The notes under the pieces: model-generated
What the model saw: only the letters and a program-made list of their open reading frames with translations
The model's database searches: none
What the model was told of the DNA's origin: nothing
Part shown: positions 15,764 to 64,000 of the stretch, piece after piece
Layout of the letters: every line of letters begins with the position of its first letter
Numbering within the stretch: the first letter of the stretch is position 1
Program-made: the position numbers and the translations under genes
Source: Macrostomum hystrix
Lineage: Eukaryota; Animalia; Platyhelminthes
Reading direction: 5' to 3'
Assembly: GCA_950097015.1 (NCBI GenBank)
Contig: CATNEN010000001.1
Coordinates: 8,432,001 to 8,496,000, forward strand
Length of the DNA: 64,000 bases

Positions 15764-18700
15764 TCACTTGACCTCGAAGATGCCATTGTAGACGCTCCCA
15801 CCGCACCTCTCGCCGGCGTTGCCTGTACAGGCCACGTTGCAGTTGGCATTGGAAGTGTCGCCGCTATTGCCGTACTGGTCTCCGCAGCCGCAGATTCTGC
15901 CATTCTTCAAGCCGAAATAGGGCAGCTTCTTGGCCTTGCAGAGATTGTTGCACTGCCACACGGTCATTCCGTTGGACACCTTGGCCACCGCCAGCTCCGG
16001 GTAGCTCGGGTCGTCCAAGTAGCAGCCTAAGAATCCTGGAATAGCGTATAGATAGGCTATAAATTACTGCAGCACAGATGAATCATTATAACAAGCCGCT
16101 AACATACCTGGATGCGGTCTCACACAGATTCGACGTGTGACAGTGCGACAAGGACATTCTGTAAATATAGTGGCAGAAATTGTAAAAAAAATTATTCTTT
16201 AAAAAAATAATAATAATTGCAGGAGGGCTGTGGGCAATGGTACATCATTTAGTGACACTAGACCCACGGCCAGCGAGGAGGCAATTCTGCCCATTTCGCT
16301 GACTCCTGAGCACACACGCACACAGATACTGTACGCAGGCATACGCTCACACAGGTGTACATCTGCCCTGACTTTCTCATCGTAAGCAGTGTACACTCTC
16401 ACTGTGCATTTGAGATTGGCCCTCAAGGGCGTAAATTGCACGACAAGTCCCCAAGCCTTCTCTCCGCTGCTGCGCCCCAAATAAATGTGGCTTCGCTGCG
16501 GAGTCGATCTTAGGGACCTTAATGCGAGAGGCAAACGCGTTAGACCCCTCTGCCACTGACCGCTCTTAGATTGCGCTTTAGTTTCTCTTGAAGTTCATAT
16601 TTACTACTTAGAAAGATGTGTGCCTCAGTTACTCACTTCCTTTGAGCACATTGTCCAGACCGGCGATGTTGGCAGGGAAAGCGCTGAAACTCATGTCACC
16701 GTGGGCGCTGCGCCTGATGAACTCCATGATCTGAACAGCGAAAACGAGGGAAGCGGCGCAGAATTATAATTAGTATTCGCAAGACAAGTGTACACTCTCA
16801 CTGTGACTTAGGGGAGATTTGGCCCTTATGAGCCAAGCCTACTCTCCACAGCGCCACAAATAAATGTTGACTTACCGCGGATTTTAAGTAAGTAGGTTGT
16901 AGCCTAGTAAGGGGTTGTAACTTAGTAAGGGGTTGCAGTCTAGTAAGGGTTTGTAGCCTAGTGGCGTCGGACTAACGACTTAAAGGTCGTGGGTTCGATT
17001 TCGGACTCCACTGGAACAATTTGTGTCCTTTAGCAAGACACTTAACACTGCATTGCTTCAGTTCGTCCAGCTGTTACGCTCGTAAATGGGTAACAGCATC
17101 AGCTTGGGTAATTGAGGGTGGGTGTCCCCATAGTCCATGGACTTTGGAAATCTAATCAAGTGGTCAGCAGCCATAGCCTACCTTATTGCTAGTCTTCGAG
17201 TGCAGCCGCGACAGCCGGCCGAAAGTCAGTTTGGCCAGTTTAGCAAACGCGCCACCCTTTGATCCACACATTCTGCCTGTGGCCACTGTGAAGAACCTGA
17301 TCCGCTTGGCCTTCAGCTTGGCGGCTACGGCGTTCATCTTGCGCTCATCCTTGGCCGACGCATCGGTGAACAGAATTATGATGGAGTTTGGCTCGGCTGC
17401 CTCGGCAGCGTCCAGGGCACCCGACATGGCAAACTCGGGACAGTCGCCGCCACCGCTGGCCTTCAGCTTGTTCAGGAAGCTGGTGATCTCCGACACGCTG
17501 GTGGTCTTCTTCAACAGCTTCTTGTAGGGATCGCCGAATGTGGCAATGACGAAGTCATCGAATCTATTGTTCGCGGCGATGATGCGCCGTATGTTATTCT
17601 TGACAGACTGGATGACCTTGCCCATGCTGCCAGTGGTGTCAATGACAAACACCAGTGAGCCGAGACCGCGATGGTCCTTCGGCGGCTTGCACGAACAGGT
17701 GCGATGAAGCACAAATTTCTCCTTGGTGCCGAGGGCACAAGCTGGAATCGAATTCGTTTTGTGAGTGCTATATCAAGAAGGCGGTGAACGCGCCCTCTCC
17801 ATCTCTCGCACTGAATGCCCTGAACTGAAATCTGCGTCGAGGCTAAAATAATTTGGGAAGCAGTCGCGAGGAGAGAAGACTTGGTAGCCAACCCCAAGAC
17901 ACAGCGCGGTGAGAGTGCACGCTGCATAACTATGGACACTGCCTGACTATGGACACTACCTAACGATGGACACTACCTAACGATGGACACTACCTAATGA
18001 TGGTCATTGCCTAACGATGGACACTGCCTAACGATGGTCATTGCCTAACGATGGACACTGCCTAACGATGGACACTACCTAACGATGGACACTGCCTAAC
18101 GATGGACACTACCTAACGATGGTCATTGCCTAACGATGGACACTACCTAACGATGGACACTGCCTAACGATGGACACTACCTAACGATGGTCATTGCCTA
18201 ACGATGTACACTGCCTAACGATGGACACTGCCTAACGATGTACACTGCCTAACGATGGACACTGCCTAACGATCGTCACTGCCTTACGATGGACACTGCC
18301 TAACGATGGATACTACCTAACGATGGTCATTGCCTAACGATGGTCACTCCCTAACGATGAGTCCTAACTTCGTGCTTGTATATTCTGTGAGTATCTTCGC
18401 AGATTCAAAGTACCATTGCAAAAAAACCTGTTTGATATTAATAAATGACAACCAAGGACTCACTCGAGGCCTCCAGCTCAATGCCAGTTGTGAAGATGTC
18501 GTTTCTCCAGCTGGCTCCGCAGTACAGAGCCCCGTTTCCCGTGCACTGCATGCGGCACTCCGCCTGGCTTCTCTTTCCGTGCTTTCCGTAGCTGTTGCCG
18601 CACCAGCACTCGTTGGCGTATTGGACTCCGAAGTAGCGATAGCCTAGACGCTTGCACTTCATGCGGCACTTCAGCACGGACATCTTGCCGGTACCAGCCA

Positions 18701-21700: not shown

Positions 21701-24700
21701 CCGCATCGACAAAGCAGCCGAGTCGACGAACTCCAACCTCTGTTAATTTTTTCAAGGTTGAAAAGGGTGCGAAAAAAACTTTCTTGATTCTGGCGATGTC
21801 TTCGTCTTGACTGGCATTTCTAAAGTCTGCTTACAGCTAGCTGCTCAGTCCATGGACTGGAAAACGTTCGCCACACCCACCGAAACTTCTACTTGTAGCC
21901 CAAAGAATTCAGATGCTTGTGTCAGTTAGGACGCTGAAGCTGAACTCATTGAAGAGCTACAGCTTTGAGCTAGATTAGCAGGTCAAAAGTTCAGCGATGG
22001 ACTCACGTGCATTAGCCAAGTCCAAACCAGTAGTGTAGATCATGTTCCTCCAACCAGCACCGCAGTAGCCAGTCTTGTCACCTGTGCACTGTTTTCTGCA
22101 CTCAATTCGCGATCGGCTGCCATAGCGACCATAGTGATTGCCGCACCAGCACTCGTCGCCATTCTGAACACCGAAGAATCTCTGCTTCTTCTGTCGGCAG
22201 AGGTGGTAGCACTTGGCGGTGCTCATGGAGCCTCTGCCAGCTAGGAGTGGCAGGTCTCTGGACTTTTGATCAACGAAACAGCCAAGCTTGGCCATGCCTG
22301 GAGCTGAAAATGTTTATAGGTAAATTAAAAACACGTATGGTCCATTAACACTGAAAAAGCGGTTTACTCATTTAGAATCCGAGACTCACTGGCAACACGC
22401 GGCGCGGACAGTCCAGTTGTGTAGACCGCATTCCTCCAGGGTCCGCCACAGTAGGTGCTCTTCTCGCCCTGGCAGAATGATCGACAGTTGATCTCAGACA
22501 CTCGACCGAACTGGCCGTACGAATTGCCGCATGTGCAGTGGTCGCCGTTCTGCACGCCGAAGTACAGATAGCCGCGCGATTTGCAATACTTGAAGCAATA
22601 GTTGCGAGTTGTCTTTGATCGGGCGGCGAGTAGCGTGGGCAAATCGCGACGACCGTTGTCGATGTAACATCCGAGATACCTGACTCCCGCAGCTATAAAT
22701 TAAATTTACGAAATTATCTTAGATATTTGAAAACTTACGGATATATTTCCTAATCGCAAAAAACTTTTTGTTGCTTGAAGCCTATTTAACTGACTCCTGG
22801 ACACAGGACACACAAGCACGCAGATACTGTAAGCGTACACGTACTCACAGATCTACGTACATCTGCCCTGACTTTCTCATCGTTAGGCAGTGTACACTCT
22901 CACTTTGACTTAGAGGTTGGCACTCAATGGCCTAAATTGCACTAATCTTTCTCAAGGTGCGAAAGGCAAAAGCGTTAACTGCTCTGCTGCTTAGTCTCTC
23001 CCTTAATCCTATAGTTATGTAGTCAAGGCTTGCCTGGTGGCCAAGCCCTAGCTGTGACATAGTGTCCGAACGCCTGGACTTCGCACAAAGTCAAAGGAGC
23101 CCGGTTCCTTGTCTCAATTCGGACAACGCGTCCAATCAGGTTGCAGCTGAAAGTTCGCACCGAGAAGGCTGCTGAAGAATGGTATGAGGCGCACTCTTGG
23201 CCGTCGACCTTCACCACGAAGTTGTTGAGTCGATTAGCGCAGCAGTCCTGCCTGTTGTAGATGGTGACCTCCGTGATTCTAGCCAGTCTGGCGGTCTTCG
23301 CCTGCCACCAGGCACCCTTAGCAGCGGCGGTGTGAGTGCAGGAATGCTTGAAGAAGTGCTGATTAGTGTTGCCGTCGATGGCTCTGATGCACGGTGCCTT
23401 CCAAACAGTCGACTTTTGCGAGCACTGAGACAGAGACAGCTTGACTGGAACAATTGTTGGTGGTTTGATGTTGAATTGTATTTTATAACGTATAAGGTCT
23501 CAATTTTCGTTAGTGCATCTGCTAAGGATACAAAATGCTTACCTTCGCCCCTCTTTCCCAATCCAGTCGCGTAGACATTGTTTCTCCAGGCGGCGCCGCA
23601 CTTCTGCTTGCTGTCGCCAGAGCATCGAGCGCTGCACTCAGAAGCGCGCCTACCCCCGTGTTTTCCATATTCGTTGCCACACCAGCACTCGTTGCCGTTC
23701 TGCAGGCCAAAGTAGGCCATGTTCTTCTGCCTGCACAGCTGGTAGCACTTCTGGATTCGCATTGAGCCGCGGCCGGCAAGGGTGGGCAGGTCGCGATTTG
23801 AGCTGTCCAAGAAGCAGCCAACGTAGAGCAGTCCCGGCACTGGAGTTTTGAGTATGCGATATGGGCTTATAAAGTCTATAACTAATTTTACTTTTAGCAA
23901 GCTGATTTCACTCACTTATATCGCCAATCGTTAGTCCAGTCGCGAAGATGTCGTTGCGCCAAGCCGAACCGCAGTACGTGCTGCCATCGCCTCTGCACCT
24001 CATTCTGCACTCTTTCTTTGGTCTCACGCCGTAACGTCCGTAAGTGTTGCCGCACCAGCACTCGTTTGAGTTCTGCACTCCAAAGTACAGGTACTTTCTA
24101 GCTCGGCACATTTGGTAGCACCTGGCTACTCGCATGTTGCTGCCTCGACCGGCCAGGACCGGTAGATCTCGTCGGCCTTTGTCGACGTAGCATCCAAGAG
24201 CTCTCATACCTGGAGCTGTATTAGTCGAAAACTATTCAAATTACGAAATCAGACAGTATATTTTAAGAGCCTTCAACATGACCACAAGCGTTTAAACTTA
24301 CTCGGAATGGCAGGCGGTGTCACACCAGTCGCATAAATGTTGTTCCTCCAGCCGGCGCCACAATACGTCGACTTGTCGCCGCTGCATCGCATCTGACATT
24401 CTGTGATCTGTCTCACACCGTAGCGACCATAGCTGTTGCCGCACCAGCACTCGTTTCCGTTCTGTACACCGAAGTACATGTAGTTCTTGCCTCTGCAGAG
24501 CTTGTAGCACTTTGGCACGGACATGTGTCCCGATCCGAGGTTGGCCGGAAGATCTCGGCTGCCCGAATCAACAAAGCAGCCAAGGTGTCTGATGCCTGGC
24601 ACTGAAATTGAATCAGTGCGTTTCAGTAAGGTGGTTTTCCTGAACTACTGAAAGTTTACAGTTGTGCTACCGATCAACTTACTCTCCGGTGCTGTTCTCA

Positions 24701-27700
24701 GTCCAGTAGAATAGACCAGATTTCTCCAGCCACCGCCGCAGAAGGCCTTGCTGTCACCGGTGCACTTCTGTCGGCACTGTGACTCGGGTTTGCTACCGTA
24801 GCGACCATAGCTGTTGCCGCACCAGCACTCGCGAGCATTCTGCACTCCAAAGTAGGCGTACCTGCCTCGCCTGCAAAGCTGATAGCAGCGGGGCACGCTC
24901 ATAACACCCGATCCCAGTTGCTCGGGTAGATCGCGAATACGGTTGTCCACGAAGCAGCCAATCTTTCGCATTCCTGGAGCTAAAGTTTTATTGCTTAAAC
25001 AATCAAATATTTTTCTTAACTAATAAAAAAAACCGAATCAAATTAATACTTACTAGGGATCTTAGGAACTTTCAGTCCGGTGGTGAAGACCTTGTTCCTC
25101 CATCCCGCGCCGCAGAATGCCGATCTATCGCCGGTGCATCGCATGTTGCACTCCCGATTCGCTCTAGAGCCGTAGCGACCGTACCTGTTGCCGCACCAGC
25201 ATTCGTTCGAATTCTGCACACCGAAATAGGCGTAGCGTTTGCCTCTGCACAAGGTGTAGCACTTTGGAACACTCATCGAGCCGCGGCCAGCTAGGACTGG
25301 CAAATCGCGACTCGCTCGATCGATGAAGCAGCCAACTAGGCGCATGCCTGGTGCTAAAAACGTCGAATTAGCTTATAATTGAGAAAATTGTATTCTAAAA
25401 AATGTTAAACTAGATCAGAAAACTACATACTTCTGATCACTTTGACGGGAAGTCCCGTGGTGTAGACGTTGTTTCTCCAGCTGGAGCCGCAGAAAGCGGA
25501 TCTGTCACCGGTGCACCTCATGTTGCACTCTCTAGCGGGCCTCGAACTGTACTTGCCGTAACTGTTGCCGCACCAGCACTCCTTTGAGAACTGCACACCG
25601 AAGTACATGTACCTCTTTGCTCGACACAATTTGTAACACTTGTACACACTCATAGAGCCAGATCCAGCCAGCAGCGGGAGATCTCTTGAGGCGGCGTCGA
25701 CAAAGCATCCGATCTTTCGAAGACCTGGTGCTGAGAAGAGTTTTTCAAGGATTTAGATTCCTAAATAACTTTCGTTTCTCTTAACATTAGAAAGATCACA
25801 CTATTTTCCCCCTGAGGGAAAGACCACGGAGGGTACCCCTATTTCAAATTCGCACTGCCTGGTTTACGATAGCTCCCAAACCGAATGACTGATTTTCGTG
25901 AAAGTCTACCACATGGATAAAACAATTTCCCCATTTACCTTCCGAACTTGCAGAAAAATCCCCCTTGTCTTTCTACTTTTTAATGCAACTCGAATACTTA
26001 CTCTTTCTCACGGCCACACAAAAGCGTCGATTGATGGTTCTGCAACGGCAGCCTGAAACAAACGAAGTGAAAAGTCAAATTACCACAACACGATGTATTA
26101 AACACAATAGTACACAAGAGAGATGTAAAGTCCTGTTTCGCTTACGTCCACGAAGAGCACTCTCAAGAGCTGCAGCGTTGGGAGGGAACGCGCTGAAGCT
26201 CATTCTTCCGTTGGCGGCACGCTTTACAAACTCCATCAGCTGAAAAAGCAAAATGTCCCGTCTTTACAAATAGTTCAATGCAAGGTCTACTGACATGAGA
26301 GAGTCACCTTGTTGAAGTGTCCAGAGCGCAGCGTAGCGACGTAGCCGCCAGAGCCTCTGGCCAATGCATCGTACTGTCCAGAGCCTCTGCCGCAAAGGCT
26401 TCCGCTGGCCACAGCGTAGAACCTGATGCTCTTCGACCTGAGCCTGGATGCCACTCGACTGCTCAGATGAGCATCCTTGGCCGATGCGTCAGTGAACAGC
26501 ATCATGACTGAGTTATGGTCGGCAGCCGCCGCAGCATCGAGTGCACCAGACATGGCCATCTCGGGGCAGTCGCCGCCACCCGTGGCTCGCAGTCGGTTGA
26601 GAAAGTAAATCACCTGCCGGGCGTCTCTCGTCTTCTTCAAATGCCTCACGTAGGGGTCGCCGAATGTGGCGACGACGTAGTTGTTGAAGCGCCTGTTGGC
26701 AGTCAAAATCTTCCGGATGTTGTTCCTAACGGCGTTGATCACGCTACCCATGCTGCCAGTGACGTCAATGACAAAGACAAGAGATCCCAGGCTCCGCTCC
26801 TCCGGGGCAGGTGTGCAAGAGCAGGTTCGTCGGGAGATGCGCTTCACTCTGGTTCCAGCCGGACAAGCTGAGTTGCGAGAAAGAGGTTTGAAAGGTTTTT
26901 GAATATTTGTTTAAACATTGACATTAGCAGGTTTAGCACAGAGTTTAGCGGAGAATAACACCTGCTGGTCTGGGCCTCTCAGCCACGTAATGTCCGAACA
27001 CCTGCACTTCGCACAGAGTCAATGGAACCAAGTTCCTCGTCTCGATGCGCACAGTGCGTCCCTCGGCATTGCAGGCGAATGAGCGCACAGAGAACGCTCT
27101 TGATGAGCGATAGGAGGCGCACACTCGACCGTCAACCTTGATGACAAAGTCGTTGAGCCTGTTCGCGCAGCAGTCCTGTCGGTTGTGGATGGTGACCGAT
27201 GTGATTCTGGCCCGTCTGCTGGTCTTTGCCTGCCACCAAGCACCTCTGGCAGTGTTTGTGTGAGTGCAGGAGTTGTGGAAGTAGCGCTGATCCGTGTTGC
27301 CGTCGATGGCTCTTGAGCAGGGTCCTCCCCAAGTGGTGGAGTGCTGAGAGCAGTGTGACAGCGGCAGCTTTGCTGGAAAGATCAAGTCGTAGATTATTAT
27401 TCCTGCTTCAATAAGTGTTCAAAACAATAACTGTTTCTATCGTTGTGCTCTCATTAATTGAAAGACGTTCGTATGTTGAGGAATCGCTGAGGGAATTAAT
27501 TTCTGTCATCATTTTTACTGGTCCATTTTCATCGCTTTTCTTGTGAGGCCGTTGGATATTGTTGGATCGCCGCTATGCCGTTTTGAACCGGTGGGGGTAG
27601 CTCGGCCATTATCTCGTCCTATTCCCCCGTCACCCCGCTCTGCGTGCCTCGCGCCGCCGCCTGATTGGCTGGGCGCGGGCGTTGTATGTTAGCCCTACCC

Positions 27701-32500: not shown

Positions 32501-32597
32501 TGTTGAATTCTTTCGCTTGTCCTGACGATTGAAAACTCTTTACTTTGTCGAGTCGAATCGGCGTGGAGTCGCATCTGATGGTCTGATTTCGGCTTCA

Positions 32598-32605
32598 TAT
32601 TTATA
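32598..32605 (-). promoter_or_regulatory. TATA box candidate of gene A
   Basis: TATAAATA ~100 nt upstream of ATG 32500. Confidence 0.55.
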
Positions 32606-49400: not shown

Positions 49401-52400
49401 GTGGCGCTCTTGTCACCTTTGCACGGTGTACGGCAGGTGTCCTCCGAGGCTCGACCGAACAAGCCGTATGAGTTTCCGCATGTGCAATGGTCACCATTCT
49501 GCAGGCCAAAGTACACGAAGCCTTTCTCGCGACAGAACTTCCAGCAGGTGGCCTTGGTAGTCTGGTGGGCGGCGTAGTGCAGCACTGGCAGGTCACGTCG
49601 GGCGTTGTCAACGAAGCAGCCAAGTCGCTTGACGCCATCGCCTGTACGACAGTGATAGGAATGACTCTAATTACCGTAATATAGAAGTGCGGTTGAAAAT
49701 AAACCATCAGTCAAAGCTATGGCTAATACTTACGCTCAGTTGCAACCTCGAGTCCAGTGGCATAGATGCTGTTCCTCCAGGCAGCTCCGCAGTAAGTAGC
49801 CTTGTCGCCGACGCACTGAGCTCTGCACTCGATGCTTGGCCTGGCGCCATGCCTACCGTAGCTGTTGCCGCACCAGCACTCGTTGCCGTTCTGAACACCG
49901 AAGAACATGTAGTTCTGTGCGCTGCAGAGAGAGAAGCACTTGTTGATTGTCATACCGCTGGAGCTAGCCCGGAATGGCAGGTCTCTGCTAGAGCTGTCGA
50001 TGTAGCAGCCAAGGCTCTTGATCTCTGTGTTTATTGAAAAGTAAATATGCCATGGTTTAAATAAATTATAGTACCAAATTGATTTTGAAATTAGTAGTCA
50101 AGAAGAAATGACGCCCAGTTAAAACAGACACAGTTCTTGCGAAGGCCTGCATAGGCTTCATACAGCTCTCTATTCCATGGACTGTGAGGCATCAACTTAA
50201 GAAATATAAGTCTTTCCCACTAGTGCCCAAATCGATTTTCGATTTTCATGGGCTGAGACTCGAAAGTTACCACTGAGCTACAAATACCGACTACTTGTAG
50301 TACTAGTAGTCTAAAATTTCGTGTACCCATTTTAAGCCTAAAAGGTCTAATTATATCAGTCAGTAGCAACTTTCATAGCTATAATAGTAAGTTAACTCAC
50401 TCGGCACAAAGCCCTCCGCCAGTCCGGTGGTGTAAATCTGATTCCTCCATCCGCTGCCGCATGTGCGTCGGCTGTCACCGAGACACTTCATGTTGCACTG
50501 CTTGCTGTCCACTCGGCCAAACAGGCCGTAGCTGTTGCCGCATGTACAACTGTCGCCGTTCTGCAGGCCGAAGAATCTGAATCCGCGCTGCTTGCAGTAA
50601 TTCAGGCAGAAGTCCTTGGTTGTCTGGTGCGCAGCTGTGTACACTAATGGCAGGTCTCTTGAGTGGTTGTCGATGAAGCAGCCGAGACTGACAACTCCGC
50701 CTAATGATGGTTTTTAATTAAAACTGTAAATTCGAATCGAAACTAGCGATTGTCCGAAACAATCAATATATTCAGTCCAAAAATTACTGATTTCTTCCTC
50801 GAGTCCGGTGGTGAAGATGTCGTTTCTCCAGCCAGCGCCGCAGTAGCTAGCCTTATCGCCGTCACACTGCTTCCTGCACTCGTTCTTGTCTCGCCTGCCG
50901 TATCGTCCATAGTGATTGCCGCAGAAGCACTGGTCACCGTTCTGCACGCCGAAGAACCTGTAGCCCAGTCTCTTGCAGAGGCCGTAGCACTTGCTGACCG
51001 TCATACGACCAGTGGCGGCGTGCTTTGTGAGATCGCGTGTGCCAGCATCAACGAAGCATCCGAGATGAATCATGCCAGGTGCTGTAGCAAAACAATGTGA
51101 ATATTTGAAAGTAAGCTAACAATTTCTATATTCTGCTTGGCGTTACACAAAAACTGTTACGTCTTCGAAAGCTTACTGGCTTCACCAGCTCTGCTAGCCA
51201 GTCCGGTGGTGTAGACCTGGTTTCTCCAGCTGCCTCCACACTTTGTCCTCTTGTCGCCCAGGCAGGGCATGTTGCAAGTGTTGTCGGCACCCCTACCGTA
51301 TCGACCGTAGGTGTTGCCGCAGAAGCACTGGCTGCTGTACTGCAGGCCAAAGTACTTAAAGCCGGCCTTGCGACAGTAGTTCCAGCAGAACTCCTTGGTG
51401 GCCTCGTGACCGGCGTCCTTGTAGTGGGGCAGATCGCGCTGGCCGTTGTCAACGAAGCAGCCGAGAAGAGTGACTCCAGTGGCTGGAAATGTTTATCATT
51501 ATGATCTTAGTGTATACAATTGAAAAAAAACAGTGCACTTGCAAAACTACCGAGACATGCAGTGACAAAACGAAAATTTTCATTCCTTAGATATTCTTTG
51601 TTTCAACATGTCAGTTTTTCTGATGAACATGCCATTGCTTATCGCGAAATGAAAAAAATATTTTGTGCTCACACGCAGTGGCGACTTCGACGCCAGTAGT
51701 GAAAATGTTGTTTCTCCAGCCAGCTCCGCAGTAGGTGGTCCGCTCGCCGCTGCACTGCATCCTGCACTCCAGGTTCGACCTGATTCCGTAGCGTCCATAG
51801 TGATTGCCGCACCAGCACTCGTTGCCGTTCTGCACGCCGAAGAATTTGTAGCCGAGCTTTTTGCAGCGCTCGTAGCACTTCGGCACCGACATGTCTCCGG
51901 TGGCGCCAAGGTGGGGCAGATCGCGAGCACCGCTGTCGACGTAGCATCCGAGGCGCGACAGGCCGGGCACTGAAATTTCAGTGTGAGGCAGCAATGCACT
52001 CTTAGGCCACAGTACAGTACTAATTATCGAAAATCTCAGCAGCGGTACTCACAGCTTGGAGTCCTAGTCGACAGGCCAGTTGCATAGATAGCGTTCCTCC
52101 AGCCGGCTCCGCACTTCTCGCGACCGTCGCCTCTGCACTTCATGTTGCACTGACTGTTGTCCACTCTGCCGAAGGCGCCGTACAGGTTGCCGCATGTGCA
52201 GCTGTCACCATTCTGCAGACCGGCGTACTTGTAGCCGCGGTTCTTGCACAGCTTCAAGCAGAAGGACTTGGTAGCCTCGTGACCGGCGTGGTGGACGAGC
52301 GGCAGATCGCGAGAGGCATTGTCGATGAAGCAGCCCAGGTAGGCAGCTTAAAGAAGACAGTAGCGAAAATTTAGTTAATTTAACTTTTATGACTGCATGT

Positions 52401-55400
52401 GAAGCAATTATAAAATGGTTTTCGTTGGGCTCTACCTGAAATATCCTGGATGCCAGTGGTGAAGATATCGTTTCTCCAGCCGGCTCCGCAGTACGTAGTT
52501 TTGTCACCGTCGCACTGCTTCCTGCACTCGTTCTTGTCTCGCCTGCCGTATCGTCCATAGTGATTGCCGCAGAAGCACTGGTCACCGTTCTGCACGCCGA
52601 AGAACCTGTAGCCCTGTCTCTTGCAGAGGCCGTAGCACTTGCTGACTGTCATACCACCAGTGGCGGCGTGCTTTGTGAGATCGCGTGTGCCAGCATCAAT
52701 GAAGCAGCCGAGATGGACCATGCCGGGTGCTAAAATAGAGTTTAATTTTTGTTACAAAAAATAGTCCCTTTTTCATAAATTTTTTACATGAAGCTTGTAA
52801 GGAGAAAATATGACATTTATCTTCAAATCCAAAACAATGCGCTTCTGGGAAAGTAGGAAAAATTCTTCAAGTTTGGTCATTTTGCTGAAAGCTACAAGCC
52901 TATTATTTACATATAATACTCCTTCTGAAATGAAACCAGTTGCGAAGCTACCGCCGTTACGCGGCGCACACAAAAGGCTGAGTACAACTGTTCAGAACAT
53001 GAACTTGACGGCAGTCACACCCAACCCAGACTTAGATCTAGCTGATTATTGTTTTCTATTTACAGCTTGATGAACTCAGGATTGACGAATTTAGTGTCTC
53101 ACTCACGAACACTAGCTCTAAGCTCTAAGCACTGGTCTAGCCGCCAATACCCATAGTTATCATGAATGCTCGTATATATTGTTATGTTTAGCTTAGGAAT
53201 GCAAGGAAATTAACTTTTGAGCATTCGTAAAATACTCGTAATTCATTAAGAATCTCGCATCTGATGCAGCGAAATACACCATAACTTACTGGCATCACCA
53301 GCCCTGCTAGCCAGTCCGGTGGTGTAGACCTGGTTTCTCCAGCTGCCTCCACACTTTGTCCTCTTGTCGCCCAGGCAGGGCATGTTGCAAGTGTTGTCGG
53401 CGCCCTTGCCGTATCGACCGTAGGTGTTGCCGCAGAAGCACTGGCTGCTGTACTGCAGGCCAAAGTACTTGAAGCCGGCCTTGCGACAGTAGTTCCAGCA
53501 GAACTCCTTGGTGGCCTCGTGACCGGCGTCCTTGTAGTGGGGCAGATCGCGCTGGCCGTTGTCAACGAAGCAGCCGAGCAAGTGAACTCCAGCCGCTAAA
53601 GAATTTGAGAGTACCGTAAGGCAACCATAGAAACAAATGCAACGAAACGAGCAACAAAGTAAGCGAAACATTATTCTTAAATATTTTAAATCTGTAACTA
53701 ATTGTGTGACTGTGACATCAGTGACCTTGTGATTCTCATTTAAAGAATGTTCATACAAACCTGCTGTGGCCACCTCCAAGCCAGTAGTGAAAATGTTGTT
53801 TCTCCAGCCAGCTCCGCAGTAGGTGGTCCGCTCGCCGCTGCACTGCATCCTGCACTCCAGGTTCGACCTGATTCCGTAGCGTCCATAGTGATTGCCGCAC
53901 CAGCACTCGTTGCCGTTCTGCACGCCGAAGAATCTGTATCCAAGAGTTCTGCAGCGCTCGGAGCACTTCGGCACCGACATGTCTCCGGTGGCGCCGAGGT
54001 GGGGCAGATCACGAACACCGCTGTCGACGTAGCATCCGAGGCGCGCCAGGCCGGGCACTGTATTGGTTGATTGAGGGTTGAGTGGAACGAGCGTGAAATA
54101 GTAAGAACTCATATTCTAGCAACTTTGTTGTAGTACGATGGCATCCGTGAGGGCAAACTCGAATGGTGAAGCGGGAATGTAAACTTTATCACAGTAAGAA
54201 TGTGAGGGCAGGTAAACATTTTTGTGCGCTTCTTTCTTTTGTAACAGATTTGAGTGCGTGCCCAGGGGTCACCGGAACGCTCAGAGTTGCAAGTTGGCAA
54301 CTCTGCTAGCTGAGGATCTATTGTTGCCAGATGATGTATCAGTACCAGAGCCCCAGAGCCACCATATAAAGTAGCATCTTATATTGAATGATTCAAGGGG
54401 GTTCTCACCTGCTGGGGTCTTGGTCGTCAAGCCAGTCGTGTAGATGGCGTTCCTCCAGCCGGCTCCGCACTTCTCGCGACCGTCGCCTCTGCACTTCATG
54501 TTGCACTGGCTGTTGTCCACTCTGCCGAAGGCGCCGTACAGGTTGCCGCATGTGCAGCTGTCACCATTCTGCAGACCGGCGTACTTGTAGCCGCGGTTCT
54601 TGCACAGCTTCAAGCAGAAGGACTTGGTAGCCTCGTGACCGGCGTGGTGGACGAGCGGCAGATCGCGAGAGGCATTGTCGATGAAGCAGCCAAGGTAGGC
54701 AACTCCAGCTAAATATTTTAATGAAGCAAATTTGTAGCGCTGAGAAAGGGTTTTTCATCCTTTTTTTTACTTTTACCTGGAATATCCTCAATGCCAGTTG
54801 AGAAGATATCGTTTCTCCAGCCGGCTCCGCAGTATGTGGTTTTGTCTCCGTCGCACTGCTTCCTGCACTCGTTCTTGTCACGCCTGCCGTATCGGCCGTA
54901 GTTGTTGCCGCAGAAGCACTGGTCACCGTTCTGTACACCGAAGAACCTGTATCCCTGCTTCTTGCAGAGGTTGTAACACTTTTCGACAGACATTTTGCCA
55001 GTCGCGGCGTGCTTGGTAAGATCGCGTGTGCCAGCATCAACGAAGCAGCCCAGGTGTTCCATTCCAGCGGCTGAAATTGTAGACAAAAAATAATAGCCCT
55101 TAGCACTAAGCTTCTGTTTCGCAATGTTTTTGCTGTCACTCACGAGAAAACGGTTTGGATCCCAGGCCTGTGGTGAAGATCTGGTTTCGCCAGTTGCCGC
55201 CGCACTTGGTCTTCTTCTCGCCTTGGCATTCCGCGCTGCAGGACGATGCGTCGGCCCTGCCGTAGCGGCCGAACTCGTTGCCGCAGGTGCACTGGAAGCC
55301 GGCTTGCAGACCGAAGAAACGATAGCCTCTCTCTCTGCAGTACTTGAAGCAGAAGGCCTTCGAGGTGCGGTGATAAGCATTGTACACGTGCGGCAAATCG

Positions 55401-58400
55401 CGACTGCCATTGTCGACGTAGCAGCCGAGGTCGCGGACACCGGCAGCTGGGTTTAAAGCAGGTTTTTCGAGTGACGATGTTATGGCTGAGTTCATTTTTC
55501 ACTGAAAAGTACAACTATAAATTAAATGCGCCTTTAAAATGGTGCTTCTTTCTTAAAGTTATGAGTTCCCTTCGATAGTACTGGGTAGGGGTGAGTGGCA
55601 GACTGGTCTGTGTGGCACACAGATTCATTTGTGGCGCAGCCGCGGAGAGAAGGTTTGGGGCTTTTAATGCTGTTTATACCCTTGAGGGCCAATCTCCAGG
55701 GCACAGTGAAAGTGTACACTGCCTGACAATGGGAAAGTCAGGTCAGATGTACACACCTGTGCGAGTGTGTGCCTGCGAACGGTATTTGTGTGCGTGTATG
55801 CTCAGGAGTCAGAGAATCGGCAGAATTGCCTCCTCGCTGGCTGGGAGGCAAAATTATCGGCCTTTGTCCGGAGCCCAACTGCGGTTATTATAATTTTTTT
55901 TTCTATCGGACTTGGATAACACTCGTAACAACAATGACGAATTGTGTCACTGATACAGATGAAGAAAGTGATACAGAAAGTATCACCAATTGGTTCTCAC
56001 CAATGCTGGCAACTTCCAAGCCGGTGGTGTAGACGCTGTTTCTCCAGCCGGCTCCACAGTAGGTGGTCTTGTCCTCGCTGCACTGCATTCGGCACTCAGT
56101 GTTTGGCCTGATACCGTAGCGACCATAGTGATTGCCGCAGAAGCAGTGAGTTGAGTACTGCACACCGAAGAATCTGTAGTTAAGTCGGCGACAGAGCTCG
56201 TAGCACTTGGGCACGCTAGCTCCGCTGACTGCGGCAACATGCGGCAGGTCTCTATCGGCGCCGTCAACGAAGCAACCCAGATACTTCAGCCCTGGAGCTT
56301 CAATGTGTAAATTAGAGGCCAATAGTTGTTACCGGCATACAAGACATAACAAAGAATCGCTGTGCAATCAATTGATAGATACAATAATAAATATATTACA
56401 CTTGACGCAAAAAAGCCAGATGCGTATTGTGCAGCCAACAGCACGGCGCATCTGCAGGCAGCCTACGGGTGTTCAGTCCACGGACTTGTGAAACACCGCA
56501 CCCACCCTAAATTACCCGCGCTGATGCTGGCACCGATTTCCAATGAACCCCGGCATTTTAGTCCCTCTTAGGCGCAGTATAGGACAACATAGAGCCAGAC
56601 AACTTGGATTGCCTTCAAAATGCTTACCTGTGAATGGTCGCGTGGTCAAGCCAGTCGTGTAGATGGCGTTCCTCCAGCCGGCTCCGCACTTCTCGCGACC
56701 GTCGCCTCTGCACTTCATGTTGCACTGGCTGTTGTCCACTCTGCCGAAGGCGCCGTACAGGTTGCCGCATGTGCAGCTGTCACCATTCTGCAGACCGGCG
56801 TACTTGTAGCCGCGGTTCTTGCACAGCTTCAAGCAGAAGGACTTGGTAGCCTCGTGACCGGCGTGGTGGACGAGCGGCAGATCGCGAACACCGTTATCAA
56901 CGAAGCAGCCCAAGTAGGTCTCTCCTTTTAATGTGTTTTTAAACAGAGGTATCGAAATTTTTGGGGGAGTAGTGGCACAGCGTTATAACTCGTTTGCCTC
57001 TCGTGCCAAGGTCCCTGAGCTCGATTCCGCAGCGAGGCTATATTTATTTGGGACCCAGCCGCGGATAGAGGTCATGGAGGCTTGTCGTGCAATTCACGCC
57101 TTTGAGGACCAACCTCCAAGGCAAAGTGAAAGTGTACAATTCATGACGGTGAGAAAGTCAGGGCAGAAGTACACCGCTGCGTGTGTGCTCAGTAGTCAGT
57201 GCAATGGGCAGAATTGCCTCCTCGCTGACTGCGGTCCTAGTATCACCAAATGATGTGCCAGTATCCACAGCTATCCTCAAAATGTATTTTAACAGTTTTA
57301 TCGAGATGTTTACTACAGGTCTAGCACTGCCAGAAATCAGAGAACTAGCTGTGGCATCACTGAACGACAGTATATATTGGTCATAGCTCGTAGACGTCAT
57401 TATGTTGAGGAGCATTTTCTGTCAAAAAATAAATAGAATTCTCACCACTGACAGTGTCTTCCAGGCCGGTCGTGAAGATGTCGTTTCTCCAGCCAGAACC
57501 GCAGTAGGTTGTCTTATCACCAGAGCACTGCATTCTGCACTCATTCTTGTCTCGGCGTCCGTAGCGTCCGTAATGATTGCCGCACCAGCACTCGTTAGAG
57601 TATTGCAAACCGAAGAACCTGTAGCCCTGCTGCCTGCACAGGCCGTAGCACTTGGCCACTGTCATGCTGCCAGTGCCGCCCAGCTTTGGCAGATCTCGGA
57701 CACCGGAGTCAACGAAGCAGCCAAGGTGAACCATACCTGGTGCTTAATAAAAAAATATGAGATTCGGATTTAATACGAATAATTAAACTTATTTTTATTT
57801 ATTTATTGGTATAACTATTCTTCACATTAGAAACTTACTCCTGGACGCCTGCGACTGCAGACCGGTTGTGTAGATTTCGTTTCTCCAGCCGCCGCCGCAC
57901 TTGGTCTCGCGGTCTCCCCGACACGGCACGTTGCAGCTGGCCTCCGAGGCCTTGCCGTAGCGACCGAAGGTGTTGCCGCAGGTACAGTAGCCGCCGTATT
58001 GCATAGCAAAGTACTTGTATCCTCTATCCTTGCAGTAGGTCCAGCAGAATGTCTTGGTTGTCTGGTACTCAGCTGAGAACACCAACGGGAGATCACGCTG
58101 CGCCGTGTCCACGTAGCATCCGAGTCTGCGAACTCCGACCTCTTTAAAAAGAAAAGTTTCCTTTCTTTAATTGATTATTTTTAACAGTAGAAAGACGCGG
58201 GGATATTGGAAATACACAGAATTTTTTTCTGTTTATTCTAATGCAAGTATATAACCAATTGTCATGAAATCCAGAGCAAGGGTAAACTTTTCCGCTCTAT
58301 CCGATGCAGCAACTTCCAGAATCACGAAACGTTGGCATCGTCGAGATATTCACCTATTCTCACCTTTCTAAAAGCACGAGTTCCTTACAAAGCTCAAAGT

Positions 58401-61400
58401 GTTCTCACTTTCATTAGCGGCATCAACGCCTGTGGTGTAGATCAAGTTTCTCCAGCCGGCGCCGCAGTAGCTGGTCTTGTCGCCGGTGCACTGCATTCGG
58501 CACTCCAGGCGGGACCTGATGCCGTGTCTGCCGTAGTGATTGCCGCACCAGCACTCGTTGGAGTTCTGAACGCCGAAGAATCTGTAGTTCTTATTCCGAC
58601 ACAGCTGGTAGCACTTGAATGCACTCATAGAACCGCTGCCAGCCAGCACTGGAAGGTCTCTGGCACCGCTGTCGATGAAGCAGCCGAGCAGTCTCATGCC
58701 GGGAGCTGAAATTATTCAGATAAAAATTCTTGTTGAGTATCTAAAGCGTGCTTATTAACGTCAATAGGTTCCCTATCGACTCACTAGAAACTGCCGGGAC
58801 AGCCAATCCAGTTGTGTAGACGGCGTTCCTCCAGGGTCCACCACAGTAGGTGCTCTTCTCGCCCTGGCACTGCGATCTGCATTGGTTTTCGCTGGCCCGT
58901 CCGAAGGCTCCATAAGAATTGCCGCAAGTGCAATGGTCGCCATTCTGCACACCGAAGAACAGGTAGCCACGTGATTTGCAGAAGTTAAAGCAGAAGCTGC
59001 GAGCTGTGTTGACGGTGTCTCTGTGCAACACTGGGAGGTCTCGATTGCCGTTATCGACGTAACAGCCAAGGTACTTCACATTGGCAGCTAAAATTTGAGT
59101 GACAGAAAGATTTACAGATAGAGTACTCGCATATTTGGTCGCACAAGTTACGGAAAATTTACGAAGTGAATTTTCTCACCAGGTGGCCAAGATCTAGCAG
59201 CAACATAGTGACCAAACACCTGCACCTCGCACAGGGTCAGCACATCGTTCTTTCTCGTCTCAATTCGCACGGTGCTTCCGATAAGGTTGCAGACGAATGT
59301 TCTCACAGAGAAGGCCGCTGTGGACTCGTACAGGACGCACTCCTGGCCGTCGACCTTCACCACGAAGTTGTTGAGTCGACCGGCGCAGCAGTCCTGCCTA
59401 TTGTGGATGGTGATCTCGGTGATTCTAGCCAGTCGGTCAGTCTTGGCCTGCCACCAGGCACCCTTAGCAGCGGAGGTGTGAGTGCAGGAGTGCTTGAAGA
59501 AGTCCTGATTGGTGTTACCGTCGATGGCTCGCTGGCAGGGAGCGCTCCAGGTGGTTGAGTGCTGCGAGCAGCTCGTCAGTGGCAGCTTGACTGGAAATAA
59601 AAAACGGATTTTTATTCCATAAAATAATAAATCGAACAGACTGCTCAGTCAGACAAATGCTGGCACCTGTTTTACACTGGGTGGACAGAACCGCTAGAAA
59701 ACTAAGCGTTTTGCTAGTAATGACAAAGGACACTATTTATTTTCTTTTGGTCGAGATTTTGGCTAAAGACCAAACCACTGATCGATGGGGCCAAGAAATT
59801 CTCACCTCTGTTATTAAGTCCAAGGCCAGTGGCGTAGACATTATTTCTCCAGCCGGCACCGCAGTTCTGCTTGTTGTCACCGGTGCACTTTGCGCTGCAC
59901 TCGGAAGCCCGTCTGCCACCGTGCTTGCCGTAGCTGTTGCCGCACCAGCACTCGTTGGCGTTCTGCAGGCCAAAATAGGCTGCGTTTCTTTGCCGACAGG
60001 ACTGGTAGCACTTCTCGATGGTCATAGAGCCGGTGCCAGCGAGGGTAGGCAGGTCGCGGTTGGCGCTGTCGAGGAAACAACCGATGTCGCGTAGGCCAGG
60101 CACTGAAGAAAATTGTTCGAAGGATGGCATCAAAGCTTTTATTGGGGTAAATTTCTAGCACAATTGTAGATGCTGTCGTTTGATACAAGTTAAACCCTAA
60201 TTACGAAGCAATTTAACTCACTGATGTCAGTGATGCTCAAACCAGTGCTGAAAATACTGTTTCTCCAAGGCGCGCCGCAGAATGTGGTGCCATCGCCGCG
60301 GCATCTGAGGTTGCACTCGGATGTAGGCTTCAGGCCGTGTCTTCCGTAGGTGTTGCCGCACCAGCATTCGTCGGAGTTCTGCACGCCGAAGAACATGTAG
60401 CTCTTGGCTCGGCACAGCTGGTAGCATCTGGGCACTCGCATCGAGTTGCTTCGCTCAGCAAGAACTGGTAGGTCGCGAGCGCCGCTGTCAACATAGCAAC
60501 CAATTGGTCGCATTCCAGGGGCTGAAAAATATAATAGAATAATAATTAGGCGTTTTTTTCTTGAAGTCCACTCGAAAAGACGGCTAGAAGCGAATCATGG
60601 AAAGAAGCCTACTAGGCATGGCTGGCGGGTTGACGCCGGTCGTGTAGACATTGTTTCTCCAGCCGGCTCCGCAGTAGGTTGATCTATCTCCGCTGCATCG
60701 CGTCTGACATTCCGAAATTTGTCTGACACCGAATCGGCCGTAGCTGTTGCCACACCAGCACTCGTTGCCGTTCTGGGCACCGAAGTACATGTAGTTCTGG
60801 CCACGGCACAGTCTGTAACACTTTGGCACGGACATGGAGCCAGTTCCTGCCAGCTTGGGCAGGTCGCGACTGCCATTGTCAACGAAGCAACCAACTTGTC
60901 TCAGACCTGGCACTGGAAGTCAGATATTTATGGTTTGAGTATCATCGTTTTCGAAAAACTGCGCAGGTTACAAAAAATAATATCGTAGAGCTCGTATTTG
61001 CCGATGGGCTGTTGGCACTGGCAAATCCTTTGGTAACACTAGACCCGCAGCCAGCGGCGAGGCAGTTCTGCCCATTTGGCTGACTACTGAGCATACACGC
61101 ACACGGATGCCGTACAAAGGCACACGCTCACACAGGTCAGCTGTGTACACTCTCACTGTACCTTGGAGGTTGGCACTCAAGGGCGTGACTCTAACTCGTC
61201 ACGCCACTCGTCACGCTAACCGCTCTGCCACTCACTCCCTCAGGTCACATCGCTAAAGTGCACGATTGTCAGCTTACTTGGCGGTGAAGTATTCAATCCG
61301 GTGCTGTACACATTGTTTCTCCAGGCTCCGCCGCAGAAGGTGGCTCTATTACCGTCGCAAGCAGAGCGGCACTCCGAGGTTGGCCTAGAACCGTATCGAC

Positions 61401-64000
61401 CGTAGCTGTTGCCGCACCAACACTCGTTAGCGTGCTGGACTCCAAAATAGGCGAAGTTCTTGCGTCTGCACAGGCGATAGCACCTGGTGATGGTCATGGA
61501 ACCGGATCCGGCCAGCTCAGGCAGGTCGCGCACTCCGTTGTCAAGGTAGCAGCCGATGAGACGTAGGCCCGGGGCTGCAAGTGTTCAAGTATCACGGGAC
61601 TGTTCAGCTCTGGTTCAAACCGATTTTCTACCGTAGCTATTACCGGTACACTCTAATGATTTCAGTTTCTTGCTCAAGGACCATCTGGTCAGAAGTTCAA
61701 AGCTCTTTAGAACCGCAGAGACACAGAGCTCTATACAAGTTTCTCACATGCTCCACAGTTAAGCAGTGGACAATACTGAAAGCAATCTTTCCCACTACAA
61801 TTATTTCTAAAGATACGCTGCTTACTTGGAATGACAGGCGCTTTTAGTCCAGTGGAGTAGACGCCGTTTCTCCAACCTGCGCCGCAGAATTTCGAATTGT
61901 CGCCAGAGCAGCGCATGTTGCACTCGCCAGCGGGCCGAACACCGTACAGCCCGTAGCTGTTACCGCACCAGCACTCGTTGCTGTTCTGGACGCCGAAGAA
62001 TGCGTAGTGTCTGCCGCGGCAGGCACGGTAGCACTTGGCCAGGCTCATGGCTCCGGTGCTGGCTAGAACCGGCAGGTCGCGGCTGCCGTTGTCAACGTAG
62101 CATCCGATGAAACGCAGGCCAGGGGCTAGGCAGAGAATTAAGATGAGTTATGACACTGGAGTTAAACTCGATCTGTTTAGCAGAAGACGTCTCGAAATAA
62201 GAATAATTTCAGGAAAATTCACTTGGATCAACTGGTCTGGGCAGTCCAGTGGAGAAGACGATGTTTCTCCAGCCAGCGCCGCAGAAGGCGGAGCTGTCAC
62301 CGCTGCATCGCATGTTGCACTCGCTGTTGGCCCTGGCACCATAGCGACCGTAGCTATTTCCGCACCAGCACTCGTTGCTGTACTGCAGACCAAAGTAGGC
62401 ATAGCGGCGGCGCCTGCACTCGCGATAGCACTTGTAGACACTCATGGATCCGCTGGAGCCCAGTACTGGAAGGTCTCGACTTGCTGAGTCGACAAAGCAG
62501 CCGATTCTGCGAAGACCAGGAGCTGGAAGAGAAGCAAGTACCCCCCGATTTTAACGGTAGAACTACCAAGAGGAGTAATTCCCTCCTGACAATGACAGTT
62601 TTTGTGCTGCACCCGAACGGAACGGAATAATGCAGGCACACGAAAGTCATGAACACCGGCCAACTTTTCTTTGCGCATCTTCTGAAACAATAATCAAGTA
62701 GCCAGCTCTTCAGACCGCTGAGTTATTCAATGCTTCTGGCCGAAAGTCAGATTTTTTCAATAAGCGCTAGTGTATTTTATCCACCCCTAAACACGAAATC
62801 GAGCTACACCTCAGTGCGGACTTGCGGGGTTTTGAGAATTTACCAACATGTCACCCGAATGTGCCAGAATCATCTCCGTCTTCGGTGGTCAACGATCTAG
62901 ACGGACTGCTGAACCTTTAAGGGCTACAACAGGTGGAACCTATGGACACCTAGGAACCTATGAACCTATGCAACTATGGATACCATTAACATTAATTTCT
63001 CCAATTTCCTTGATCAAGCCTAAATATTTGGCGCAGCTCAACCACAGGACACCCTCGCCAAGTCTGGCAACCAATCAGTCACAACCCTACGCTGTTAGCA
63101 TTCGGGCGCTGTCAAAAAAGTTTCAGGGGGGATTTCCACTCAAAAACTTGATATAAAAACGGGCGGCAAAATAGCTTGGTAGTCCTACGAGTACTATTAA
63201 GCAAGATTCTGTTAAAAACATGAAACTACGAGTAGAAATTAAGCTAACTTTCCATCGACTTCGATACTATAACATTCTCAGACAAAACTGATGCCCACTT
63301 ACTGAGCCTCTCAGCCACACAGATTCGTCGGTTGATTGTTCGGCATCCACAGTCTAAAAACAGAACGAAACATTGAAAATTAATAAAATACGAGTATTGA
63401 GTTCATCAGGTGTTTAAGTTACATATATTGATTAGAATACTTACGTCCTCGCAGAGTATTGTCCAGTGCGTGAGAGTTGGCTGGGAAAGCACTAAAACTC
63501 ATCTTGCCATTAACGGCTCGCTTCACGAACTCCATCAGCTGTTTATAAATGGTTGCAAGCAAAGTTTAATAAAATACGTTTAGCGAGAACTAATCGGCTA
63601 ATCGAAATAACTCAAGAACACACTAAGATCAAGGCTCGGCCCACCTTGTTAAATATTGACGAAGCCAGACGGCTAACTTGTCCATTTGAGTCCCTGGCGA
63701 GCTGGTCAAACTGCTTTGTGCCAACGCCGCACATGTTGCCACTGCCTACGAAGAACAAACGGATATGCTTTGCGTGCAGCTTAGAGGCCACTACGCTACG
63801 CAGGTGTGCGTCCTTCGCAGATGCGTCAGTAAAAAGCATCATGACGGAATTAGGATCTGCAACATCAGCAGCGTCGCGAGCTCCTGACATGGCGAACTCG
63901 GGACAGTCGCCACCGCCGCTGGCGACAAGACGGTCGAGGAATCGCCTGACCTCGGCAGCGTTGGTGGTCTTAAGCACATTTCTAACGTAGGGATCACCGA
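46440..64000 (-). CDS. Gene B: paralog of gene A, 5'-incomplete (vWA-WSC6-FTP-WSC20-vWA-WSC visible)
   Basis: Exons >64000-63645, 63538-63445, 63353-63303, 62522-62223, 62125-61826, 61574-61278, 60912-60613, 60521-60222, 60102-59806, 59590-59180 (FTP), 59087-58785, 58705-58409, 58141-57839, 57742-57446, 56924-56628, 56297-56001, 55446-55144, 55070-54777, 54708-54409, 54057-53761, 53595-53290, 52729-52436, 52346-52053, 51969-51673, 51482-51177, 51081-50788, 50700-50401, 50024-49734, 49641-49339, 49223-48924, 48779-48220 (vWA), 47552-47459, 47348-47298, 46711-46440. Exon lengths match gene A in the colinear parts. Confidence 0.88.
46914..47150 (+). mobile_element. SINE family 1, partial
   Basis: GCTCGATTCCGCAGCGAGGCC...CCTCCTGCAA. 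Confidence 0.8.
47955..48081. repeat. 127-bp imperfect palindrome (hairpin-type non-autonomous element)
   Basis: Arms GTTTAATTCA/TGAATTAAAC, TGGTTAGAAT/ATTCTAACCA, GGCTGC/GCAGCC, AATGGTC/GACCATT; loop CTCGCTGCGCTCG. Confidence 0.8.
55590..55845 (+). mobile_element. SINE family 1 copy
   Basis: Colinear with the consensus; ends GCCTCCTCGCTGGCTG. Confidence 0.8.
56966..57277 (+). mobile_element. SINE family 1, near full-length
   Basis: GTAGTGGCACAGCGTT...GCTCGATTCCGC...CACAGCTATCC. Confidence 0.85.
59180..59590 (-). other. Gene B F-type lectin exon
   Basis: AIDGN...SCTHT...IHNRQDCCAGRL...LTLCEVQVFG. Confidence 0.9.
61005..61237 (-). mobile_element. SINE family 1, partial
   Basis: ACACTAGACCCGCAGCCAGCGGCGAGGC...CCTTGGAGGTTGGC. 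Confidence 0.8.
62545..63178. mobile_element. MITE-like repeat, same family as 12460-12992
   Basis: Ends match the septin-intron element in reverse orientation. Confidence 0.55.

Follow-up and report, generated by a model that had tools for sequence, protein, structure and literature searches.

The window analyzed here, a stretch of 64,000 nucleotides (nt) from the flatworm Macrostomum hystrix (contig CATNEN010000001.1, our C1, positions 8,432,001-8,496,000), contains three genes assembled from exons that encode WSC, F-type lectin and vWA domains: genes A and B, which are giant and lie on the minus strand, and gene C, a small copy on the plus strand. A and B are probably old tandem paralogues whose products are giant, soluble, secreted and polycationic strings of lectin-type modules that bridge glycans or polyanions. 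Coordinates are positions in the window unless a contig is named, the contig labels (C1, C7 and so on) being our own numbering. Domain searches were run exon by exon, and exons were joined only in scripts, for frame, length and charge.

Three genes assembled from lectin-type and vWA exons

A hidden Markov model (HMM) built from the window's own repeats identified 50 WSC domains in 15764-64000, 46 on the minus strand and four on the plus strand at 40190-42500, while jackhmmer located five F-type lectin domains (at 23032, 26948, 29000, 31052 and 59178) and four vWA domains (at 17167, 26290, 48211 and 63636, the last being cut by the window end). The Pfam identities are WSC (PF01822, E 1e-19 to 1e-21), VWA_4 (PF25106, E 2e-35) and F5_F8_type_C_2 (PF22633, E 3e-13). 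A first-pass annotation of this DNA had counted about 50 WSC, five F-type lectin and four vWA domains over three neighbouring genes, and the HMM, jackhmmer and Pfam results reproduce these counts exactly. When the 20 kb past the window end are included, genes A, B and C together hold 55 WSC, seven F-type lectin and six vWA modules, and no stop was found in any of these domain exons.

Each WSC or F-type lectin domain corresponds to one exon (approximately 290-306 nt or 411 nt, respectively) that is in phase 1 at both ends and is bordered by an AG acceptor and a GT donor, with a single GC donor as the exception. The vWA module is spread over three exons, the main one, an 'LMEF' exon of 94 nt and a mini-exon of 51-52 nt encoding 'CxCRTxNRRxCV', although the mini-exon was not found behind two of the vWA exons of gene B. 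Every gene has a single signal-peptide exon and a single stop-bearing exon, and the stop-bearing terminal exons of both A and B score above the Pfam threshold for WSC.

Gene A occupies 15764-32500 on the minus strand, with its ATG at 32500, and its 30 exons join into a single stop-free frame of 2,911 aa (324 kDa). Position 15764, at which the first-pass annotation had started the cluster, is the last base of the gene A stop codon. The module order is signal peptide, two WSC, F-type lectin plus WSC (twice), F-type lectin, vWA module, six WSC, F-type lectin, eight WSC, vWA module, terminal WSC-like domain and stop, for a total of 19 WSC, four F-type lectin and two vWA domains. The features of gene A are as follows.

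32443-32500, minus strand: exon 1, ATG and signal peptide MANRAWLVLATCLFYAVLQ, phase-1 donor CAAG/GTGAGT
26900-31500, minus strand: tandem unit (F-type lectin exon, intron, WSC exon, intron) of 2,052 bp, about 2.25 copies
26002-26867, minus strand: internal vWA module, with the VWA_4 exon at 26308-26867, the 'LMEF' exon at 26146-26239 and the 'CxCRTxNRRxCV' mini-exon at 26002-26052
23034-23444, minus strand: fourth F-type lectin exon, GC donor CAG/GCAAGC
18464-22692, minus strand: WSC exons A11-A18, in which ECWCGN and HCTCGN subtypes alternate; RNA splice joints over 18464-21739
15764-17741, minus strand: C-terminal part, with a vWA exon at 17182-17741, exons at 16637-16730 and 16107-16158, and the terminal WSC-like exon from 16034 to TGA 15764-15766

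We considered whether a vWA exon could be the start of a new gene and rejected this, since the vWA exon at 26867 has a phase-1 acceptor 90 nt past the donor of an F-type lectin exon. The fourth F-type lectin exon apparently uses the GC donor, at 23032-23034, where the paralogous exons have GT. One intron of gene A holds a tandem repeat (17922-18359) of 26 copies of a 17-bp unit.

Gene B covers 46440-64000 on the minus strand of the window with the 3' part of the gene (37 of 47 exons), its first exon lying 7,070 bases past the window end. The full model, predicted from frames and splice sites and extending into the 20 kb past the window end, joins all 47 exons into a single frame of 4,680 aa (518 kDa) that terminates at TAG 46440-46442. 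Its module order is signal peptide, a 109-aa Arg-rich exon, two WSC, vWA, WSC, vWA, F-type lectin, WSC, F-type lectin, WSC, vWA, six WSC, F-type lectin, 20 WSC, vWA, terminal WSC-like domain and stop, giving 32 WSC, three F-type lectin and four vWA domains; two of the F-type lectin, two of the vWA and five of the WSC modules, as well as the remainder of the cut third vWA exon, are gained past the window end. The signal exon of gene B, MGKIAWLLLAVCFVCALTM, is paralogous to that of gene A. Directly behind the signal peptide follows exon 2 (minus strand, window end +6,558 to +6,887), which encodes 109 aa of approximately 45% Arg with a repeated RRWSRPVRRHVRHV unit; it has no Pfam match, and no such exon was found in gene A. 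Within the window, the features of gene B include the following.

63303-64000, minus strand: third vWA module, with the main exon at 63645-64204 (cut by the window end), the LMEF exon at 63445-63538 and the CxC mini-exon at 63303-63353
59180-59590, minus strand: third F-type lectin exon, from jackhmmer and a motif scan
49734-55446, minus strand: four-exon WSC cassette amplified in gene B specifically, exons B18-B29, with exons 87-98% identical

Just downstream of the gene B stop is a further tandem repeat (45037-45971; 37 copies of a 25-bp unit).

Conservation of module motifs

The eight cysteine columns of the WSC domain are kept in all 55 copies of genes A, B and C, and the WSC exons align cysteine for cysteine with the WSC domain of Kremen-1 (E 8e-10). 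Representative and terminal exons score 58.7-74 bits against a Pfam cut-off of 27.8, the terminal WSC-like exon of gene A giving 58.7 bits. The C-terminal halves switch back and forth between two WSC subtypes, ECWCGN and HCTCGN. The F-type lectin exons match FBP32 (3cqo, E 3.7e-24), Sm-hPAF (E 5e-18) and the eel agglutinin AAA (1k12, E 3e-14). Known F-type lectins carry a fucose motif (His...Arg-x-Asp-x4-Arg/Lys) and a calcium motif (h2DGx) (PMC5712786), and in seven of seven copies here we found both H(x26)RQDCCA[NDG]R and AIDGN, with the spacing of FBP32.

The vWA exons score 121-122 bits against VWA_4 (E 2e-35), and all six copies have DxTGS and FTDA, resembling the metal ion-dependent adhesion site (MIDAS) with its first Ser replaced by Thr. 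The AlphaFold2 (AF2) model of the internal vWA module of gene A is predicted to adopt a vWA fold (predicted local distance difference test, pLDDT, 85; predicted template modelling score, pTM, 0.80), and Foldseek placed this model with the vWA folds of CMG2/ANTXR, integrin beta and ITIH1 (prob 1.00, template modelling score 0.61-0.67). A sequence search of the PDB with the vWA exon returned no match, and an Atlas search with the same exon returned generic vWA clusters only, with scores below 0.9.

Secretion and charge

First exons encoding signal peptides lie at 32500 (A), at 39475 (C) and 7,070 bases past the window end (B). No membrane segment was found in any domain exon, the highest 19-residue Kyte-Doolittle mean being 1.58 in a core strand of the vWA domain, and the A and B proteins end '...FEVK' right at the last domain and immediately before the stop, indicating that they have no glycosylphosphatidylinositol (GPI)-like tail. 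All module types are basic. Gene A encodes 460 K+R against 178 D+E (net approximately +280, pI 9.8) and gene B 668 K+R against 347 D+E (net approximately +320, pI 9.45), to which the Arg-rich head is added. The composition is rich in Cys, Arg and Gly, and the WSC domains of gene A contain one N-glycosylation motif. The products of A and B are thus secreted, multivalent in lectin-type modules and strongly polycationic. The first-pass annotation had reported signal peptides where 5' ends are visible and neither a transmembrane segment nor a GPI-like tail, and both statements hold; its reading of the products as secreted multivalent lectin-module proteins agrees with the signal peptides, the intact F-type lectin motifs and the complete WSC cysteine columns. 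The glycan cross-linking that it proposed is a prediction, and the settings it had offered (mucus, adhesive, seminal fluid, agglutinin) are all candidates.

Transcription, splicing and selection on gene A and gene B

RNA was examined over the region 15720-21700 in contigs from four public runs, which come from two studies and carry three organism labels. Nine introns with CT..AC ends (GT..AG on the minus strand) are spliced out in these transcript contigs, at the joints 16034/16107, 16158/16637, 16730/17182, 17741/18464, 18760/19273, 19575/19957, 20253/20693, 20988/21061 and 21358/21437, which coincide with the predicted exon borders and also exposed the two small exons behind the vWA exon. 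Since the contigs lack the introns, they must derive from spliced RNA, regardless of the label of the run. When joined, the ten 3' exons of gene A form one open frame that covers five WSC domains, the vWA module and, before the stop, the terminal WSC-like domain; because the contigs are short (at most 1.2 kb) and span two to four exons each, the continuity of the ten exons rests on overlapping contigs. The first-pass annotation had left room for the exons belonging to several small genes or being silent, and what we found is that the 3' ten exons of gene A are transcribed and spliced together as a unit. The records are contigs, and their depth is no measure of expression level. In some contigs a WSC exon is joined to a distant or an earlier one, as at 18612/21175 ('skips 2562'), 19729/19000 and 21609/19980 ('goes back'). 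Chimeras made by the assembler from similar exons are the most likely cause, exon skipping and repeat-number variants being the alternatives.

To compare A with B, 15 positionally matched pairs of WSC exons were pooled, giving proportions of nonsynonymous and synonymous differences (pN and pS) of 0.17 and 0.63, and a ratio of nonsynonymous to synonymous substitution rates (dN/dS) of 0.14 at a dS of approximately 1.4. These values indicate that the A/B duplication is old and that both copies are under purifying selection.

Growth by exon duplication within a genome-wide family

The modules of this cluster are abundant in the M. hystrix genome, in which we counted at least 436 WSC exon candidates (150 of the 150 scored were above the Pfam threshold), at least 134 F-type lectin exons and at least 51 vWA exons of the A/B type; all genome counts and lists are lower bounds. 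Among the matches listed, the three module types co-occur only at C1:8.447-8.503 Mb, and the A/B/C cluster belongs to a wide expansion of WSC, F-type lectin and vWA mosaics in this genome.

Several other loci were noted among these matches. C7:5912300-5935600 contains about eleven near-identical 1.7-kb repeats with several WSC exons each. Three vWA exons of the A/B subtype (54-58% identity) flank these repeats, and no F-type lectin match was found near the locus among the matches listed. F-type lectin exons that are 52-63% identical to the A/B copies form dense arrays at C1:6619500-6637200 (which also has a WSC exon), C39:5197000-5200300 and C3:4452900-4462700. Finally, four vWA exons lie at C24:6.56 Mb.

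Three stages of growth can be read at the one locus: a 2-kb duplication with identical introns, a cassette with like exons and diverged introns, and a small gene from an inverted fragment. The first is the 2,052-bp tandem repeat of gene A, whose copies are 99.6% identical, introns included, and which is therefore either a very recent duplication or an effect of assembly. The second is the amplified cassette of gene B, whose exons differ by a pS of 0.07-0.39 and whose adjoining introns (68-560 nt) differ in length and are unalignable. Exons this alike beside unalignable introns fit exon-limited gene conversion, and this pattern suggests that homogenization in the cassette was restricted to exons.

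The third stage is gene C (39475-42527, plus strand), in which a signal-peptide exon is followed by four WSC exons (40190, 41079, 41573 and 42231), with a predicted product of approximately 430 aa. Its signal-peptide exon at 39475, MKLSHIGLIALISCTGLTNA, is unrelated to the signal exons of A and B, while its WSC exons are copies of the amplified cassette of gene B and brought along a portion of one upstream intron flank. Because the final donor has been lost, the frame continues for eight codons to TGA 42525-42527. Gene C is therefore an inverted partial copy of gene B in which both the first exon and the stop are new, a recent offshoot with four WSC domains. The locus is a clean case of protein growth through the duplication of phase-1 exons.

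Spacer and dispersed repeats

The spacer between A and C contains one further element, which is separate from the lectin genes and whose reading frames overlap and are broken.

34990-37450, plus strand: fragment of a retroelement of the long terminal repeat (LTR) type, with RVT_1 (E 2.5e-24), a weak aspartyl protease match and a gag-like region

A repeat of approximately 380 bp in an intron of gene B (62810-63189) has at least 1,519 candidate copies in the genome at 72-84% identity, and related pieces resembling short interspersed elements (SINEs) seem to be present at 15043-15486, 16199-16534, 39800-40150 and 55591-55893. The depth of the transcript contigs peaks over 16120-16519. An ARAGORN search found no tRNA, indicating that these SINE-like repeats are not recognizable tRNA copies.

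Proposed function and alternatives

If A and B act as multivalent binders, which we consider likely, their products would be secreted from a gland or epithelium, and each molecule would carry, along a positively charged backbone, tens of sites that bind glycans weakly, to which the vWA domains may add cation-dependent protein-protein contacts. Such a molecule could bind glycans or polyanions and link them to one another (acidic or sulfated glycoconjugates, the surfaces of cells or microbes), and this bridging would thicken, glue or agglutinate an extracellular secretion. The architecture itself grows by phase-1 exon duplication.

Several points weigh against this proposal. Glycan binding by the flatworm WSC domains is a prediction; the WSC domain of Kremen contacts protein, not sugar, and the WSC modules could be structural spacers. 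The vWA metal site is likewise predicted, and threonine takes the place of the first serine of the MIDAS pattern (DxSxS...T...D). In addition, the RNA support is confined to the ten 3' exons of gene A (its 3' third), and exon skipping, which is possible at any phase-1 exon, could yield much shorter products.

A more specific role, to which we give only tentative credence, is that A and B form the matrix of an epidermal, rhabdite, adhesive, cement or shell-gland secretion, in which a cationic lectin scaffold gels or sticks acidic mucopolysaccharides. Both the high positive charge and the 45% arginine of the gene B head favour such a role, as do the nearest relatives of the vWA domains, which are secreted K/R-rich giants of M. 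lignano with 26-33% K+R (44-62% identity; only 11 matches at E <=1e-30 among 1.84 billion representatives). For example, A0A1I8JEL7 (LCCL and VWA_4), PAA86075.1 (two VWA_4 and VWD, 4,112 aa) and A0A1I8GDF5 (SUEL lectin and VWA_4) are, like A and B, secreted, large, lectin-associated and very basic, although the partners of VWA_4 in these mosaics are LCCL, VWD, SUEL lectin and K/R/C-rich repeats and not WSC and F-type lectin. From these domain combinations, the A/B-type vWA seems to be a module shuffled among large secreted proteins of Macrostomum that are cationic and bear lectin domains. The cohesive protein Mlig-ap1 likewise pairs lectin domains with K/R-rich regions (PMC8621496); nevertheless, the Macrostomum glue proteins ap1 and ap2 contain no WSC, F-type lectin or vWA domain.

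A seminal role, in which A and B would be components of the prostate gland or seminal fluid that are passed at (hypodermic) insemination and act on sperm or on partner tissue as giant kin of the small WSC proteins of M. lignano, is in our view somewhat unlikely, but it is a candidate because small WSC proteins recur among the prostate-limited seminal-fluid candidates of that species. These include the prostate-linked transcript RNA815_80.4 with two WSC domains (PMC4490696), Mlig-pro46 and 'several other SFP candidates' (seminal fluid proteins), which resemble WSCD2 (PMC6953679), and many candidates of an in situ hybridization (ISH) screen with WSC-type best matches (PMC5977470 Table S1). They belong to the same genus, are secreted and carry tandem WSC domains, and the closest WSC relatives of the A/B exons are indeed M. 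lignano WSC-only proteins (37-45% identity, with an open reading frame of two WSC domains as the query). Rapid turnover by duplication is also typical of reproductive proteins. However, the M. lignano proteins, whose site of expression is known, are small (0.7-1.4 kb transcripts; two to three WSC domains and approximately 200-450 aa, as opposed to 19-32 WSC domains and 2,900-4,700 aa), have no reported F-type lectin or vWA domain and are only 37-45% identical and at most putative orthologues; the dN/dS between A and B is low for fast-evolving seminal proteins; and the number of WSC exons in the genome means that most cannot be prostate genes.

A broader proposal, which we regard as speculative and unlikely, is that of a 'reverse mucin', in which the A/B giants and the wider family would be the main gel or glue scaffold of flatworm secretions (seminal fluid, rhabdite mucus, egg cement), a huge lectin chain that cross-links glycans, the converse of a glycan-coated chain to which lectins bind, and that is kept uniform by exon-restricted gene conversion. 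It is improbable that A and B serve as humoral agglutinins for pattern recognition, clumping microbes by way of fucose- and glucan-type ligands. In fish and invertebrates, F-type lectins do act in immune recognition (PMC5712786), multivalency and positive charge favour binding to microbial surfaces, and large, fast-duplicating lectin repertoires are typical of invertebrate immunity, but a size of 320-520 kDa and this number of modules are far above those of known soluble agglutinins. Finally, that the models are an artefact joining exons of several small genes, pseudogenes or mis-assembled repeats, as the brevity of the transcript contigs, their odd joints and the 99.6% identical repeat might suggest, is very hard to reconcile with the overlapping spliced contigs that chain ten exons to the gene A stop, with some 60 domain exons having no internal stop, start exon or terminal exon among them beside the one signal and one stop exon per gene, and with the signature of purifying selection.

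The proposal of secreted polycationic lectin strings thus remains the one we favour. Macrostomum is a model genus for sexual selection and for bioadhesion. Positional RNA-seq of M. hystrix has been published (PMC10468722, Wiberg et al. 2023), and these existing data could place A and B in one or the other context.

Comparison with known systems

The first-pass annotation did not recognize the architecture of this cluster. That judgement stands for the giant WSC/F-type lectin/vWA form, for which no characterized protein was found, but not for secreted WSC proteins as such, which are already known in Macrostomum from M. lignano. The polycationic charge, the membership in a genome-wide mosaic expansion and the small WSC seminal-fluid candidates in this sister species go beyond what had been noted. 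We found no paper or database entry in which WSC arrays are combined with F-type lectin and VWA_4, although the protein searches were of exon length only, so that giant relatives elsewhere are possible; the search for homologues reached proteins of 0.55-1.75 times the query length, which puts giant relatives out of range, and within that range the F-type lectin exon returned two weak short matches only. Likewise, the literature search found no paper naming WSC domains together with F-type lectins, nor one describing such an architecture with vWA, mucus or adhesive.

Each module type has well-characterized relatives in other contexts. The WSC fold is shared with Kremen, polycystin-1, WSCD1/2, glycerotoxin (a secreted annelid protein with two WSC domains) and fungal WSC lectins, which have one to three WSC domains per protein and act in other settings (receptor, toxin, cell-wall sensor). 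The F-type lectin exons match AAA and FBP32 and keep the fucose triad and the calcium motif, and tandem and mosaic F-type lectins, such as Drosophila furrowed, are well known; those described have one to five F-type lectin domains, either by themselves or joined to pentraxin, C-type lectin, CCP or H-type lectin domains, whereas the combination with a WSC array and vWA is not in PMC5712786. Hemicentin and VWA7 share the VWA_4 family and the DxTGS variant, a likeness of domain type only, and membership in the hemicentins, in which a long Ig array, EGF and a fibulin-type C-terminus follow an N-terminal vWA, was rejected since the A/B exons encode no Ig, EGF, G2F or fibulin modules and no VWA7_N.

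In overall design, the closest parallels are the M. lignano glue proteins, ap1 (C-type lectin, vWD-C8-TIL and EGF) and ap2 (TIL-vWD-C8-LDL and two long repeat regions) (PMC8621496), and the gel-forming mucins. These are likewise secreted repeat proteins of giant size, in which lectin or adhesion domains stand beside highly charged regions, and they act through multivalent contacts between glycans and proteins. Their building blocks, however, are vWD-C8-TIL, C-type lectin, EGF, TSP-1, LDL and low-complexity repeats, and the A/B models contain none of these. Membership in the ap1/ap2 group was rejected because their domain lists (PMC8621496) have no module in common with these models, and membership in the gel-forming mucins because A and B lack vWD-C8-TIL exons and a proline/threonine/serine (PTS) region. 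The giant WSC/F-type lectin/VWA_4 protein is a new architecture of known lectin and adhesion modules, in a family already partly known in the genus. If its multivalent glycan binding is true, A and B would rank with the largest tandem lectin arrays so far described from animals and would point to a lectin-based route to extracellular gels or glues that differs both from mucins and from the flatworm glue proteins known to date.

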